From Ginkgo biloba (taxonomy: Eukaryota > Plantae > Ginkgophyta): DNA of 17,341 nt. Shown here in pieces: positions 1,819-16,690 of the stretch (within the stretch, counting starts at the first letter, position 1; every line of letters begins with the position of its first letter). The translations under genes were made by a program, and so were the position numbers. The stretch lies in contig JANKJI020000002.1 in NCBI GenBank assembly GCA_024626585.2, positions 28,814,507 to 28,831,847 of the forward strand, read 5' to 3'. The notes under the pieces are model-generated. The model was not told where the DNA came from, ran no database searches, and saw only the letters and a list, made by a program, of their open reading frames with translations.

Positions 1819-3887
1819 AATAAATCGATCAAAGAAAAATAATTCTTATGAAACAAAACTCTTATTGGCAAGTGGCATGAAATCATGAATGAAACAAAAA
1901 AAATTATTGCACAACAATCAGTAGTGGCCAAATATAAATTCAAGGGCACATACTTATTGCACATATCATTGTGAATTGGTTGGTTAATATTATTATAAAT
2001 TCCAGCATATTTCCACTATGTTGGAACTATTTATGGTACAAGTTACTGCCATTTTTCCCATAATATTGATGTGATGCTTTCCTAAAANNNNNNNNNNNNN
2101 NNNNNNNNNNNNAATCTTGGATTTATTTTATTCTTTTAATAAAAGTTTTCACAATATGAAAATAAAAATTAATAGAATATACTCTACAACATATAGCATT
2201 GAAAATAAATGCTAATAAAATTTATAGAAACAGATCAAATGTCTAATGATACTAAAACTTGGGAGAAATCTAATTCTTACAAACATAATTTTTTTTAATT
2301 GGTTGCATAGTAAGAAAACTAATTGAATAGTGAAAACTATAAGCCCTGCCTATGGCAGAAACTAAACTTTACATATACACCCCACAACAAAATGAGATGT
2401 AAATAAAACAATTGATTCTAACATAATGTTTTGTTAACGTGCAACAATGACACTTGCCATCTTTTTCATAAAAGCCCACAATAACATTAACATTGTATAT
2501 AGTGATAAGACAATAATGGTGATAGATGATTTGTTGGCACAACAATTCTTGAAGAAGACAACAATAGGGATTGATGCATCAATCAAACTAAAACTATTAC
2601 TTTTTTACAAATTATATGATCATTGTACACTTCTGCTCGAAAATGAGATGATGCTCATTTTTATCTAACTAAAGTTTATTATGCAACAATTGCTTACCCC
2701 CCATTGAGTTGTTATACTGTTTACAGGATCATAAATAAGTGACGTCTACAATGGGCCACTTGCCTTCTCTAGATAAACATCACTATGAAATTTTTGTACC
2801 AAGAAGATAAGCATAGCAAGATTTTACTTAGAATTGGATCAATTAAAATTCTCTCAAAACACTATTCAGACATCATGCATTTGACTTTTAGGCTTGTTGA
2901 AGGAGAGATGAATTGGGCAACTAAATGGTGCCAAGTACCTGAATCAAGGCAAATATCATATAGATTCTTAGTCACCTATTCCTGCTATTTTTGAACAATC
3001 ACAAGTTTCCTTAGAATTTGCAAGAAACATGGAATTTACTTAGAATAAGATTCATTCCTAGAACATTTCGACGAGCCCGATTCTCCTCAACTGATTGATT
3101 ATACCATCAGAATACTGTATCTTGAATGTCATTATAATAGTACTACATAGATTCAAATCACTTCTTTTATTAGAGATATTGTAAGCTCCCTATTGTACTT
3201 TCTAAATAATGAATTAGGATCAACTATCCTTTCCCCACCATGGTCATTGATATAATGACTTAGTAATAGAACTGTGGATAAACAACATCTTTTGGGCTAT
3301 GCCATACAAATTATGTAAGGATGTGTGTGCTAAATGTGAATTTCTAAAAATAAATTAATAAAATGGAACTTCACACTTTTAACTTCAACAATTAATAAAT
3401 AAAATTTACTATTTTCCTTTATTTTACATAAGAGAAAAGGGAGAATCATATATCACAAACATAAATAAACATGAATCAAACTTTCTCATCACATCTGGGC
3501 CTAATAAATTATTTAATACACCACTAAAAGTAGTTTATGAAAATGTTAACCTTTCCCTAATGAGAACTCTAAAAGTCTTAAGGAGAAATAAACAACAAAN
3601 NNNNNNNNNNNNNNNNNNNNNNNNNNNNNNNNNNNNNNNNNNNNNNNNNNNNNNNNNNNNNNNNNNNNNNNNNNNNNNNNNNNNNNNNNNNNNNNNNNNG
3701 TACACATGCGTATACACAGGTTATTTTGAAATGTATGCAAACATAATAATTTTGGATTTACCAGCCAAAGCTGTAACAAAGCATGAATGGGTGGAGTTCA
3801 TTTTAATCCGCCAAAAGGTAGGTTTGGTTTGTATAACAATGTATTAAATTAATTTTACAGTTAGTACTAAGAAATGAGTACGTTTAC

Positions 3888-3970
3888 CACTGCTTCTACA
3901 AAAGGTGAATTAANNNNNNNNNNNNNNNNNNNNNNNNNNNNNNNNNNNNNNNNNNNNNNNNNNCCTTGAT
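3888..3970 (-). CDS. maf: Maf internal exon IK...LNSPFVEAV spanning the N-gap at 3914-3963
   Basis: Acceptor tttggatccAG|ATC AAG G at 3970. After the gap the sequence reads (n)TT AAT TCA CCT TTT GTA GAA GCA GTG|GTaaac, with the donor at 3887. The nominal 83 nt fits the roughly 27-aa I.EG...HPL..PFVEAV segment. Confidence 0.8.
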
Positions 3971-4099
3971 CTGGATCCAAAGATAAGTTTCCATTTGTTC
4001 ACTAGAAGGTTGTAAGTACAAAAGAGCATTTGAATAGCTAGCTAATAATATCTAATCATTTTGGGCTGCAATCAAGGGATTAAAAGGTGTTGAGCTTAC

Positions 4100-4141
4100 C
4101 AGACTTTCAATTACATCATCAGGAATCGCATGAAAGTAGAT
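4100..4141 (-). CDS. maf: Maf internal exon IYFHAIPDDVIESL (42 nt, phase 0/0)
   Basis: The minus strand reads gtttgctcAG|ATC TAC TTT CAT GCG ATT CCT GAT GAT GTA ATT GAA AGT CTG|GTaagc, with a canonical acceptor and donor. The upstream intron is 4142-4347 and the downstream intron is 3971-4099. Confidence 0.88.
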
Positions 4142-4347
4142 CTGAGCAAACAAAACTAATTTGAAGTGAAGAAAGACATAATTTCTAGAGAATGGACAAA
4201 AGCAAATTTACAAGCAAAGGACCAGGGCCCAACGCAATTTTAATGACTTCTGCAAATGACCAATAAATGACATGCAATCTCGATGACTTCCAATAAAACA
4301 AATACAGATTTTTCATTAAGTGAACTACATCTTGCGAAAACATATAC

Positions 4348-4605
4348 CTCAGTTTTGTCCCATCCTCCTTTCTTCATCCCTGTCTTGAGATTCGTCACCA
4401 ATACAGATCCTACAGTGCTTGCAGGGGATCTCGAATAACTTGATCTGCAGTTATATATGGATTCTAAGCTTATTTCACCGTTGTTGATATTTACAAGCTT
4501 TGACATAATGTCCTCTGCTTTCGCTTCAACTAAAGCCATAGCTTTCTCATCAATATCTTTGCCCATTCTTTCACGGGGAGGGCTTCTTCCTCTACTTGAC
4601 ACCAT
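4348..4605 (-). CDS. maf: First (fused) exon of the chimeric Maf ORF: about 16-aa non-Maf leader MVSSRGRSPPRERMGK plus Maf segment from DIDEKA to GWDKTE
   Basis: ATG at 4605 opens a frame that stays open to GAG|GTATAT, a donor at 4347. Maf similarity starts at about 4557 (GAT ATT GAT GAG AAA). The ORF track's 121-aa ORF reads on into the intron after TE. Confidence 0.75.
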
Positions 4606-5577
4606 ATGGAAATTTTAATAACAAATATCTTTCCATAGCCATCTTTCCCTCATAATCAGGTATCAATATTAGAGGAACAAAATAATAATTATGGGTTTGG
4701 AGATGGATATGTAGGGTTTTCAAGAAATCACATAACAATTTTTTCACCACTTTATGGGGCTTACTAGGCCTACATGCATGCAACACATTCACTTGCTAAA
4801 AGAACATTCTTAGATTCACATAAAACCTTACATCTTTAAAAAATTTGAAGCTCAATAAGTACAGGGATAAAAAAATATTTAACTAAGATTCAAAACACAA
4901 GCCCATTCAATAGCTTCACATATTCATAATTTCAAAATTTTTGACAAACTACCCAAATAAAAAACCATGGCTTCAAACTTGAATCTTCAAACAACATTGC
5001 ACCACAGACATAAACTTCAACCAACTCTTAACTAAGCTCTGATACCACTTTGAAGGAACATCAGAGTGCATAGCTAAACACATGCATCTAAACTCCTAAC
5101 AATAAACACAGGATAATGAATCAAGTATAGTAAACATCTATGAGTTAGTAGTTCTCAATGCAACCATAAGAATGAGCAAAGTAATATGATTCATTCACAT
5201 GCTTGTTTTGCTTAGAAGTAATTAGAAGTAAATACGATGATAGCTAATTATATAGTTAAAGGCTTAATTGTGCAATGCTAATTGGGGGATAATTGGGAGG
5301 AGGGTGATTGGAACAAGGGGCATTGAAAATAGGAATAAGGTCCCAAACTCAATTCATTGCATGAGGAGAAATAATTTTTTAAATAGGAAATAAAAGGTTC
5401 AAGTTTTGATTTATATCTAGTTATATATTCTATCCACATTTGCAGTTTGTCTATGTAGGCATACATGAAGGACTGCTTTTGTATGCTTGCATTATAAAAA
5501 CATTAGCCTATAAAATACTCTACATTCAACCCACCACTTTATGAAGAAATAGAAACAGGAATCTTTTGATCTTATGA
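4559..5577 (-). mobile_element. 5' portion of an LTR retrotransposon: LTR 3' end at 5051, PBS and about 480-bp leader; distal LTR boundary uncertain (candidate TG at 5524, or in the gap from 5578)
   Basis: An LTR-terminal CA at 5052-5051 is followed by the PBS. No gag/pol motifs or second LTR copy were recognised, so the superfamily cannot be assigned. Confidence 0.65.
5036..5047 (-). promoter_or_regulatory. LTR-retrotransposon primer-binding site complementary to the 3' end of tRNA-iMet
   Basis: Plus-strand gctctgatacca equals TGGTATCAGAGC on the minus strand, the canonical plant PBS. It follows ...gttccttCA plus a 3-nt spacer (aag), the expected geometry after a 5' LTR. Confidence 0.88.
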
Positions 5578-6403
5578 NNNNNNNNNNNNNNNNNNNNNNN
5601 NNNNNNNNNNNNNNNNNNNNNNNNNNNNNNNNNNNNNNNNNNNNNNNNNNNNNNNNNNNNNNNNNNNNNNNNNNNNNNNNNNNNNNNNNNNNNNNNNNNN
5701 NNNNNNNNNNNNNNNNNNNNNNNNNNNNNNNNNNNNNNNNNNNNNNNNNNNNNNNNNNNNNNNNNNNNNNNNNNNNNNNNNNNNNNNNNNNNNNNNNNNN
5801 NNNNNNNNNNNNNNNNNNNNNNNNNNNNNNNNNNNNNNNNNNNNNNNNNNNNNNNNNNNNNNNNNNNNNNNNNNNNNNNNNNNNNNNNNNNNNNNNNNNN
5901 NNNNNNNNNNNNNNNNNNNNNNNNNNNNNNNNNNNNNNNNNNNNNNNNNNNNNNNNNNNNNNNNNNNNNNNNNNNNNNNNNNNNNNNNNNNNNNNNNNNN
6001 NNNNNNNNNNNNNNNNNNNNNNNNNNNNNNNNNNNNNNNNNNNNNNNNNNNNNNNNNNNNNNNNNNNNNNNNNNNNNNNNNNNNNNNNNNNNNNNNNNNN
6101 NNNNNNNNNNNNNNNNNNNNNNNNNNNNNNNNNNNNNNNNNNNNNNNNNNNNNNNNNNNNNNNNNNNNNNNNNNNNNNNNNNNNNNNNNNNNNNNNNNNN
6201 NNNNNNNNNNNNNNNNNNNNNNNNNNNNNNNNNNNNNNNNNNNNNNNNNNNNNNNNNNNNNNNNNNNNNNNNNNNNNNNNNNNNNNNNNNNNNNNNNNNN
6301 NNNNNNNNNNNNNNNNNNNNNNNNNNNNNNNNNNNNNNNNNNNNNNNNNNNNNNNNNNNNNNNNNNNNNNNNNNNNNNNNNNNNNNNNNNNNNNNNNNNN
6401 NNN
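5578..6403. other. Largest assembly gap (826 N); one of 15 N-runs in the window
   Basis: Run of N characters. The long poly-X ORFs in the track come from it. Confidence 0.99.
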
Positions 6404-7626
6404 TACCAAATCCCATCCGCACTCCCATTTCCTGGGAACTTAGTTGTTAAATACACCCTATTGTCCTAGATGACAAGGACTTTAATGGGTTCAATGAACC
6501 AACCCACCCTCTATTACAAATTAGGAATCGGCTTTGTTGGTAACCCAAAAAAAGGCCTAAAAATGAAGAAAGGGCACTTCAGAGGATCAAGAACCCTATA
6601 AAAACACAGAAAATCATGATTCTGAAAGTACAGCTTCCACAAGTGCCAATTCAAAGTCATCTATTGGAGTATAAGCTTGGAGGGCCATTTTAGGCCAGCA
6701 AATGTCACATTTGGTCTACAAAACTGTGCCCATTGTGTGGGGCATCTTGTGCTGATTCAAACAAGCAGTTGTACAACCCGTTTTGGACTCTTGAAGAGNN
6801 NNNNNNNNNNNNNNNNNTTGGCATCATTCCAATCACATTGGCACTGCATAGAGGTCTGAGGACTGCAAGTCAAAAGGTGCCACATGATAGAGGGAGCTCT
6901 TACGATGTAATACATGTGGAACGTCGACCCTGGGAAAATGTGAGCCTTGTTCCAATGACCCCTGACACATCAGGGGTCAACAAAACATCAAAAAGCATGT
7001 TGGCTCAATAGGAGCCGATACACCTCGATAAAGTCAATGAGACCTCATTAATGCATCCGTTCATTTTGTCCAAAAGAGAAACGTAACCCTGTTGGAGAAA
7101 ATTCCACCCTTGACTGCAATATGATATATATTAGCCTTACACTTGCCGTTTTGGGGTCTGTGGAGGTATGTACTTAAGGTGCAAAGGTACCGTACAGGAA
7201 TGGGCCCGTGGTCAAGGCTAATTTCAGCCAAAAAGAGAACAGAACAGCCTGCAGTTCAGACATAGACGAGACAGTACTGCTGCTGCCATTACTGCTTAAA
7301 ATGACAGCAGACGAGAAGTTGAATTTACAGTGGAAAACCAATCTTGCAGAGGGATTTGGTAGGGCCTTGTGATAGCTCCTACAAGAGGTATTTATATATT
7401 TCCTTTTGCTGTCCTTTCGCTTCATTTAAGACGTGTTATTCCATCAATGCTGCCTACTATTGTAGAAATATCAGTGTATACTTACTGATTTTAATCATTA
7501 ATTGTTGGGATTTGACCCCCTCGGTTCCCAGAGTTTGTTATTACTACGTGACTGTTAAAACGTGTTTATCTGCATGTTTTGTGAAATGTAAGCACGTTAG
7601 ATGACTGGAAATTATTTATACACTGC

Positions 7627-10379: not shown

Positions 10380-11471
10380 ACAGAGCTCACCCATGCTACC
10401 AAAACAAGTGAAGCCAAAAAATCCAATGGAGCCTATAATAGAACCAGACAACATTTATTAAAGATAGAGATAGACCATCCAAACATTTCCTTAAGGCCCT
10501 TAGGAAGAAGCATTGGAACAAATTCAAGCCATTAGGAATGGGATAAGAAAGTCACCGCCCCTCAATAAATAGATGAAGTCATCCACTACTGTTATGCTCA
10601 AATTTTCAAGTCTCAAGGTCAGTCAGAAACCTACATTATAGCTCTTAAGGCCTATAGAAGAGCAGTGCCCCAAAAGTTAAGTCTAGAACAAACTAGGATT
10701 TGTGATTCTCCCTTGAAGATTGAAGAGATGAAAGATGACTTAGATGACATCAATGAGAAGTCTTCCGACCTTGATGGCTTCCCTTGTATAAAGCCACTTG
10801 GGAGTTCATTGGCCCTATTCTCTTCAAGGGCAAGATGTATCAAGAAGACTTAAAAAAGGGTCACTTAGAGACATCATCAATCAAGGATTATCAAGTTCAT
10901 CCCCAAGGCTCGAGACCCTAAAGTTTATAACCAATTGGAGAGCAATAACCTTCCTTAATGTTTCTCACAAGATCCTGGCTTAAGCCATAGCCAAAAGAAT
11001 CAAACATCTCCTCCCCAAAGTGGTTAGACATGAACAAAATAGTTTCATCAAGGGAATTTATATCCTTGACAATCAAGTACGAGTCTAGGAGGAGGAAAAT
11101 GGGCCAGGCAATCTAGTCAGGACATCTTCTTTCTCAAAATTGACTTCAAAAAAGCACACGACAGCATAAAGTGGGACTTCACTCTAAGAATGTTGTCAGC
11201 ATTAGGATATGGAGGCTACTTACTAAGAATAGTAAAAACCTTTTTTGTTGATGCCTCTATTAACGACATTAAGTCTGCATCTTTTGGTTTGTTTAGATCT
11301 GTAAGGCAGAGATACCCTCTAGCCCTGGTCCTTTATGTGCTTGTTGCAAATGCTTTGGCATATTTAGTTGAATAATAAGTCTCTATAGGAAACATCTATT
11401 GTATATTTCTTTCTCCCAATGGAGCCCACTAGATGGTTAATGTGCATTTTGATGATGACTCTTTCTTTACC
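10380..11471 (+). mobile_element. Degenerate L1/Tx1-type LINE ORF2: linker and reverse transcriptase domain
   Basis: Motifs appear in order across stops and frameshifts: KSSDLDGFP (KSPGPDGF-like), NWRAITFLNVSHKILA*AIAKRIKHLLPKVVRHEQNSFIKGIYILDN, WARQSSQDIFFLKIDFKKAHDSIKWDF, RSVRQRYPLALVLYVLVANAL (RQGCPLSP-like) and VHFDDDS (FADD-like). The upstream SKHFLKAL...YCYAQIF resembles the endonuclease-RT linker. The start coordinate is approximate. Confidence 0.92.
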
Positions 11472-11953: not shown

Positions 11954-12530
11954 AACAACCTTCTCCTCTAAAACGTACAATATAAGCTTATTAGATTTGT
12001 AATTAAGATGGAAAATGCATAAGAGAGTGAGATGACTCTAGTCATGCATTTAAAGATAGAAAACAACCATAAATTGATCTCACAATGAAGGCCCATATAT
12101 AACAACTATTTAGACTTGTTAATTTATGGTAGTTAATACTTACTTATGTTAGTTTTAGTGTTAGTCAGGGAGAAGACTATTAGACTAGGTTTGACTAGTA
12201 GCTAAAGATGCAACCACCTTTTTTTTGGTTATGGGGACTATCTAAGGGCTTGGAAAAAGATAACAACCAAACCTTTGGTCCATAAATACAATAATTAATG
12301 CTTAGTTGCTATTATATCTCCACTGGTCTCTACCACATAACACCACTTTATCAAGGATGCTAGGTGTAGGCCAATATTACTAGTTTTTGGCATGAGGATA
12401 AACCTAATGCTAAGGGTATCTATCCTTTACTAATGGTTTGATGATTCTCAGTTTAAACCTTAGGGCTACACTTATAAATCTAAGTAAAAAAATCTTATTT
12501 ATAAGAATATTTACCATCGATACACTAACA
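11954..12530. repeat. Copy 1 of a non-coding dispersed repeat (probable LTR fragment or solo LTR) lying between the two LINE parts; may extend left to the gap at 11571
   Basis: Collinear with 16071-16690 through many shared blocks: ctcctctaaaac, ttagatttgta, aatgcataa, ttaatttatgg, ttatgttagtttt, gactagtag, atggggac, taagggcttg, caaacctt, tttttggcat, agggtatc, taagaatatt. It ends in acactaaCA, where LINE coding similarity resumes. Confidence 0.85.
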
Positions 12531-16070: not shown

Positions 16071-16690
16071 AACAACATGCTCCTCTAAAACCTACAAAAC
16101 AAGCTCATTAGATTTGTAGGTAAGATAAATAATGCATAAAAGAGTTAGGCGACTTTGGTCATCCATTTAGAAATGTAAAATAACTATAAATTAAGTACAT
16201 AGCAAGGACCCATACATACTATTATTTTCTCTTATTAATTTATGGGGTTTAACATTCAATTATGTTAGTTTTTACGTTAGTAGGGGAAAATATTGTCAAA
16301 CTAGGGTCGACTAGTAGATAGGATTCCAAACACCTTTTGTTGGCCATGGGGACCGCTTAAGGGCTTGAGCAAAGTGGTAGTCAAACCTTCGGTGCATAAA
16401 TGCAATTGTTAGCATCTATTGGCTATTAGAGATTAACTAGACTCCATCCCTTAATCTCAATTTGTGAAGGATGACAGGCATAGGCCATTATGGTCTCTTT
16501 TTGGCATAAAGATAACCCTATATGTTAGGGTATCCACCCTTCCCTAATAGTTTTGTGGTTTATCGGTTAAACCCTAGGTCTATAACAATAACCCCAAGTT
16601 GGAATCGGTAAGAATATTCACCATGGCCGTATTTTTAGTCCGTGGGACATGGCTTCACCAATGGCCATCCGATCCAAACTGACACTAATA
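16071..16690. repeat. Copy 2 of the same dispersed repeat, in the same orientation
   Basis: Block-by-block similarity to 11954-12530. It ends in acactaata (copy 1 has acactaaca) and has about 60 extra bases near the right end. Confidence 0.85.

Follow-up and report, generated by a model that had tools for sequence, protein, structure and literature searches.

The window analyzed here is a 17,341-nt stretch of the Ginkgo biloba genome (contig JANKJI020000002.1 of assembly GCA_024626585.2), AT-rich plant nuclear DNA with 15 N runs in 17 kb. Its minus strand carries the end of a long terminal repeat (LTR), a tRNA-Met primer binding site (PBS) and the leader of a retroelement, followed by a short piece of Maf sequence without introns and, from 4439 downward, by exons 6–9 of an authentic Maf-like gene with their own introns. 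This "half-spliced" architecture is a composite of two histories. On balance, we read the locus as an old retroelement with a captured Maf fragment that was joined to the authentic Maf gene, probably by an error of assembly.

The window was compared with several sequencing runs. X2 is an independent DNA resequencing run from a different tree, and 37% of its contigs were examined. X24 is a polyA RNA run, of which 6% was examined, and X15 is a run only guessed to be RNA. X1 has a share of 0.98, zero differences from the window and a uniform depth of about 77. The structure of the parent Maf gene was derived from the loci of Nelumbo (L001) and the lycophyte Diphasiastrum (L002) together with the independent X2 contig rec15, and exon borders were recovered by placing the Nelumbo and Diphasiastrum proteins on their own loci. 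The spliced Maf model was compared exon by exon, by reference, and the element was read in its frames as they stand. The closest protein for the Maf-derived part is P0001 (Gb_14530), a 196-residue protein with a PF02545 domain, which is the only database protein found with the open reading frame (ORF) at 4605–4243. The intact Maf exons of the window align to P0001 with 100% identity. Rfam and tRNA scans of the window gave no matches. The features are, in minus-strand order:

5052–5577, minus strand: 3'-terminal part of the LTR, ending in ..CA at 5052–5051; its upstream continuation is lost in an 826-N gap (5578–6403)
5036–5047, minus strand: tRNA-Met PBS TGGTATCAGAGC, complementary to the 3' end of tRNA-Met
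4559–5035, minus strand: internal leader of the element, high-copy at 4888–5035 and low-copy at 4559–4887, with stops in all frames and no domain
4243–4605, minus strand: 121-codon ORF (MVSSRG..) with its ATG at 4605–4603, crossing the leader, the Maf fragment and exon 6 into intron 6
4440–4558, minus strand: processed (spliced) fragment of Maf mRNA, made of exon 3 without its first 7 nt and of exon 4, ending at the exon 4/exon 6 join
4390–4439, minus strand: first 50 nt of Maf exon 6, common to the element-borne copies and the authentic gene; the joining zone
4348–4439, minus strand: exon 6 (YSRSPAST..WDKTE, 92 nt), 100% identical to P0001, with one RNA difference (4429)
4142–4347, minus strand: intron 6 (206 nt, GT..AG), its RNA joint from 4141 to 4348 carried by 11 X24 reads and the X15 mRNA contig
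4100–4141, minus strand: exon 7 IYFHAIPDDVIESL, placed by the P0001 alignment and RNA
3888–3970, minus strand: exon 8 (IKEG..NSPFVEAV, 81 nt), interrupted by an N gap at 3914–3963
3153–3189, minus strand: terminal part of the last coding exon (ELTISLIKEVI; stop at 3155–3153), with a 3' untranslated region (UTR) to about 2700–2895

A captured Maf fragment behind an LTR end and primer binding site

The initial annotation had placed an LTR-type end followed by a PBS on the minus strand, and both are present. The PBS at 5047–5036 matches TGGTATCAGAGC exactly over 12 of 12 nt and begins 3 nt past the ..CA at 5052–5051, the arrangement of an LTR element. It is the sole match in the window, with 0.07 expected when up to one mismatch is allowed. 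The same 12-mer is the stated tRNA-Met PBS of plant copia elements (PMC3852365). The PBS and the adjacent leader proved repetitive in independent runs; the initial annotation had named their being non-repetitive as grounds for refutation. The segment 5036–5070 alone is matched by many contigs from three runs (loose ends at 5034–5036 and 5070), 4888–5070 by dozens of contigs at 80% identity or more in X2 and X15, and 4888–5035 is covered by 10–32 contigs per site in these two runs. The remaining leader (4559–4887) is low-copy, with an X2 depth 5–9 times single-copy, and the summed depth across 5073–5257 is 7–8x. The supposed LTR is unevenly repeated: at the edge of the 826-N gap, 5443–5577 reaches an extreme copy number (summed depth of 11,235 in X2 and 379 in X15) and is far more repeated than the adjoining 5258–5442.

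The PBS and the start of Maf homology are separated by 477 nt (5035–4559). All three frames of 4559–5050 are broken, which leaves no gag or pol coding capacity there, and Pfam searches with the ORFs at 4595–4795 (leader) and 5281–5502 (LTR) returned no family. On sequence grounds, the element is non-autonomous or decayed. The suggestion that the leader ORF beginning MVSSRGRSPPRERMG is the start of gag found no support, and a related X15 contig diverges at 4602, in the second codon. Near 4940, the reading K-F-stop-N-Y-E-Y-V-K may recall a copia gag N-terminus, in inter-stop pieces shorter than 20 residues. The window holds no second copy of 4559–5577 that could be a second LTR, which may lie outside it or in gaps. 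No polypurine tract (PPT) or target-site duplication (TSD) was seen in the window, and the start of the LTR itself is lost in the N gap at 5578–6403.

The switch from leader to Maf is abrupt, as first described: an ATG lies at 4605–4603 and Maf homology begins at 4558, corresponding to residue 27 of P0001. At the nucleotide level, homology to the mRNA starts at 4558–4556, right after the internal CAG of ACTGCAG and 7 nt into exon 3. The element side of the junction ends in ..GGCAAAG, and the true mRNA upstream of 4558 reads ..LGFTFTVMTA, unlike the window (X15 loose end at 4558). The exon borders of the parent gene agree between Nelumbo and Diphasiastrum. In both, exon 3 opens with ACTGCAG followed by A.. 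(T-A-D-I-D-E) and closes with ..EAK, exon 4 closes with ..TAD-Q/T, exon 5 measures 70 nt and runs from GTG to AAAG (VVxEG..FIxG), exon 6 opens with G-YS and no intron interrupts the last exon (VGS...stop).

In the window, the exon 3/exon 4 border is fused without a seam, and the 70 nt absent between 4440 and 4439 are exactly exon 5, a skip that joins exon 4 to exon 6. The missing residues, VVHEGIIREK.. and ..NEEEARLFIKG, can be read from RNA loose ends at 4438 and 4439. Exon 3 also has a 30-nt deletion at 4539/4540, where the RNA loose end (4539) spells the missing IRREKPEDLV, and exon 4 lacks about 5 nt ahead of ITADQ. Together with the 70 nt of exon 5, the latter loss makes 75 nt, so the ORF stays open. 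The fused border and the exact absence of exon 5 point to an RNA intermediate, and these comparisons support the assignment of 4440–4558 as an old, diverged and spliced Maf copy of RNA origin.

The initial annotation had also called for a count of copies with the same junction, and at least three diverged contigs of the independent run carry it. The 4558 junction is found in X2 rec18, rec19 and rec20 and in X15 rec11 (87–90% identity). X2 rec18 matches 4390–4665 at 87% identity and crosses both the 4558 and the 4439 junctions with 277 letters for 276 places; X15 rec11 matches 4390–4603 and 4660–4801 at about 90% identity and crosses both junctions with 228 letters for 214 places. At these lengths neither the 30 nt nor the 70 nt can be accommodated, so both are absent there too. 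X2 rec19 and rec20 (87–89% identity) extend across 4558, and X2 rec21 matches 4591–4792 with one difference. The likeness of X2 rec18 and X15 rec11 to Maf and the window ends at 4390, 50 nt into exon 6. Junctions shared by diverged copies indicate that the chimera, which combines the leader with a portion of exon 3, with exon 4 and with the beginning of exon 6, formed once and was then copied, and capture by a retroelement followed by amplification is thus the history that the alignments support. In X15 rec11, about 314 nt that the window does not have lie between 4660 and 4603. The depth of this contig is 17 versus 74 for the true Maf mRNA contig, about a quarter, and this paralogous leader–Maf chimera is possibly transcribed, X15 being only guessed to be RNA.

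A route to this structure can be proposed. The 5' part of the retroelement spans 5577 to about 4390 on the minus strand, comprising the LTR end, the tRNA-Met PBS and a degenerate internal region. An element of this kind located upstream in the Maf gene would have given rise to a read-through transcript, and splicing would have linked a donor in the element (..AAG) to a cryptic acceptor lying 7 nt into exon 3. The resulting chimeric RNA, in which exon 3 begins behind the internal CAG and exon 4 leads directly into the beginning of exon 6, exon 5 being skipped, would then have been reverse-transcribed and the copy later duplicated. The part of the initial claim that an LTR element captured Maf RNA agrees with the exon fusions, the skip of exon 5 and the recurrent junction. 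The mechanism it proposed, a template switch, fits less well: the 4558 junction resembles a splice join more closely than it does a random template switch, ..AAG being donor-like and CAG acceptor-like.

The ORF at 4605–4243 is predicted not to be a Maf enzyme and to have no Maf activity. It aligns to residues 25–137 of P0001 with 35 gap positions, lacks the N-terminal GSSS (GSxS) motif and reads ITADQ out of frame; of the Maf exons, 1, 2 and 5 are absent from the window, as is the beginning of exon 3. A Pfam search with this ORF found no Maf domain even at E ≤ 1, only noise, and a PDB sequence search with the fused-exon piece returned coiled-coil noise only. No polyA RNA was found on 4600–5577 in the part of X24 examined.

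The authentic Maf gene from 4439 downward

The initial annotation had treated the Maf sequence as a single piece of cargo reaching down to 3888. This does not hold: the sequence from 4439 to 2113 agrees almost perfectly with RNA and X2 rec15, 4440–4558 does not, and the gene continues to the stop codon at 3155–3153. X2 rec15 (5302 nt) equals the window on 2113–3189 and 3700–4439 with 2 differences and departs from it exactly at 4439; its next 1452 nt match nowhere on 4440–5577, as would be expected of the true intron 5.

RNA reads show the same border. There were 45 of 74 reads that were at least 99% alike, lying on the authentic exons, and 20 that were less than 90% alike, lying on 4440–4558. 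All RNA reads differ from the window at 4459, 4466, 4478, 4493, 4511, 4519, 4529 and 4531. Sites that differ from RNA number at least 8 of 119 on 4440–4558 versus 2 of 453 on exons 6–9 and the 3' UTR (Fisher p = 9e-5), so that divergence from the mRNA, at least 6.7% above about 4439, falls sharply to 0.4% below it. At 3009, the window differs from RNA and other trees (C>G); X2 has G too, and the site is hence a polymorphism.

The lower exons are connected by RNA. Position 4100 is joined to the exon that contains the gap, with a loose end spelling IKEGLVFNVA (X24 reads and X15 rec8), and 3886 is joined to 3189 through 33 letters that encode GSIDSVMGLPK (X24, and X15 rec8 at a depth of 74). The 3' UTR is covered by the X15 mRNA contig rec8 at 2895–3189, and X24 reads reach about 2670. 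The flanks of the 3914–3963 gap are continuous and in frame. Positions 3970–3964 read ATCAAGG, and 3913–3888 ends L-N-S-P-F-V-E-A-V followed by GT; both flanks fall in one 27-codon block of P0001 that is a single exon in Nelumbo. With 7 and 26 of the 81 nt of exon 8 visible, 48 nt are missing versus 50 N written, and X2 rec15 spans the gap collinearly with 48 letters (738 letters for 740 places overall). The region 4439–3153 is an authentic, expressed Maf-like gene, with exons 6–9 and their own introns, and is not cargo.

The last exon contains a further feature:

3190–3699, no strand assigned: sequence absent from X2 rec15, lying inside what is the last exon of other plants; low-copy at 3190–3317, repeat at 3318–3599, then an N gap

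About 410 visible nt and the N gap interrupt an exon that is undivided in Nelumbo, Diphasiastrum and X2 rec15, which has just 41 letters between 3700 and 3189. The N gap (3600–3699) would conceal the initial 35 nt of the last exon. Segment 3318–3599 is a very high-copy short repeat, A-tailed on the plus strand, with a depth above 2000 on 3223–3592. In the sense of the gene, the insert ends acceptor-like, with ..caatag before G. Candidate readings are a polymorphic insertion, a newly formed intron and a misplaced contig.

The join inside exon 6

The element-borne copy and the authentic gene meet in about 50 nt of common exon 6. At 4429 the window has T, as does the paralogue X15 rec11, whereas C stands at this site in X2 rec15 and in each of the 12 RNA reads. 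The element-derived part therefore extends into exon 6, and the switch lies within the approximately 40 nt common to both. The window reads AA rather than AG before exon 6, so the observed mRNA, with ..AAAG followed by GTTATTCG.., is unobtainable from this arrangement. Among the run contigs, X1 rec5 is the only one that carries the join. X1 closes the N gaps at 3600–3699, 3914–3963 and 6799–6817 at zero length (rec7 has 1219 letters for 1238 places), whereas by RNA and X2 the gap at 3914–3963 contains 48 nt; X1 thus looks assembly-derived and not independent. We infer that the join is probably a chimera, an in-silico crossover made during short-read assembly.

Several points weigh against this interpretation. 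No independent reads from the reference individual itself contradict the join, X2 comes from another tree with 37% of its contigs read, and X1 supports the join should it be real data. With respect to the element, no gag or pol domain was found that would place it in a superfamily. No complete copy bearing both LTRs, a PPT and a TSD was seen, and the chimera may have been copied by retrotransposition or by segmental duplication.

The alternative that survives best takes the join as real in the reference tree. An element-borne Maf fragment or cDNA would have recombined with the donor gene in exon 6, replacing exons 1–5 and intron 5. The outcome would be a null or chimeric allele headed by an LTR, or else a partial duplicate of very recent origin. 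The join is carried by the gap-free assembly contig 3964–5577 as well as by X1 rec5, the T at 4429 is shared with the paralogue as homologous recombination would give, and X2 contains 86% of the sampled words of the stretch. However, X1 appears assembly-derived, the independent contig X2 rec15 departs from the window at 4439, and the homology available for recombination is only about 40–50 nt. RNA from other trees requires an intact gene, and a second structural oddity on the same scaffold, at 3189/3190, suggests assembly trouble. A recombinant allele or very recent partial duplicate is consequently regarded as possible but unlikely. The full succession of events, in which a fragment captured by cryptic-acceptor splicing recombined, as a spliced copy, with the gene that had donated it across about 50 nt of homologous exon, is considered rather improbable.

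A single template-switch capture of a partly spliced Maf pre-mRNA, which replaced gag-pol and made everything from 5051 to at least 3888 cargo, accounts for the order of LTR, PBS, leader and Maf in one gap-free contig and for 5' exons that are fused while 3' introns remain. However, a half-spliced capture predicts equal divergence on either side of 4439, which misfits the step observed there. None of the introns occurs in the paralogous copies, which end at 4390, X2 rec15 agrees with the window on 2113–4439 and no further, and no 3' LTR or PPT was found in the 3.1 kb below the Maf stop codon. This scenario is very improbable.

An endogenous pararetrovirus (caulimovirid) as the source of the PBS, in place of an LTR retrotransposon, is the most remote of the explanations: judging from the titles of badnavirus and caulimovirus papers, caulimovirids also use the 12-mer TGGTATCAGAGC, which starts their genomes with a long leader next, and a long non-coding leader does follow the PBS in the window, but ..CA precedes the PBS by 3 nt, many contigs have in common about 19 nt on its upstream side, as at LTR ends, and no caulimovirid protein domain was found in the window.

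cDNA-mediated intron loss at the donor locus was ruled out, the fused exons being about 7% diverged from the mRNA and exons 6–9 identical to it.

Relation to known captures and meaning

Plant LTR retrotransposons with transduced host fragments are established, with maize Bs1 and surveys of rice and sorghum as examples in a review (PMC13317346). The element described here resembles Bs1-type elements in its LTR-type end, its tRNA-Met PBS, an intron-less, partial and non-functional piece of a host gene and the presence of several diverged copies. It differs in that only the 5' LTR/PBS side is seen, the cargo is about 170 nt from three partial exons, and there is no sign of a new protein. Gymnosperm genomes contain about 400,000 coding fragments captured by transposable elements each, according to a 2026 study (PMC13477047). 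The Ginkgo fragment would belong to the same class of events, old and possibly transcribed; unlike in that BLAST-based survey, the exon borders here directly evidence an RNA intermediate.

The proposed route has a counterpart outside plants. Transduction of oncogenes by retroviruses through read-through transcription and splicing is the classical model. The shared properties are an acceptor-like CAG at the start of the host sequence, a donor-like ..AAG at the end of the element and host exons that are spliced, including a skip; the differences are that the element is from a plant and that the route is a proposed one. The authentic gene is like plant Maf/7-methyl-GTP pyrophosphatase-like proteins (PF02545; P0001 and Nelumbo P0024), with window exons 6–9 identical to P0001, expressed and spliced. 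The join resembles short-read chimeric contigs in that two loci are joined in a common stretch, an independent contig disagrees and there are 15 gaps in 17 kb. Unlike in established cases, the chimera is unproven for the reference individual.

Elsewhere in the window, a degenerate reverse transcriptase (RVT_1, E 3.3e-5, below the Pfam cut-off) at 11070–11372 on the plus strand, together with 10792–10980 (plus strand), is probably a decayed long interspersed nuclear element. A dispersed direct repeat of about 272 nt with 73–76% identity occupies 11954–12225 and 16071–16341.

Capture of host exons by plant LTR elements is already well documented, and one further case is not news by itself. At the level of the assembly, a gap-rich sequence may stitch a captured fragment to its donor gene and so mimic a "half-spliced retrogene", and X1 is unsuitable as independent support for other windows of the same genome. 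Should the join be real, the Maf promoter and first five exons would have been swapped for an LTR, a leader and a shortened ORF, a natural "knock-in" in a gymnosperm. The footprint of splicing is unusually legible in this fragment, and its exact 70-nt exon skip, fused border and start behind an internal CAG point to capture from a spliced read-through transcript over a random template switch.

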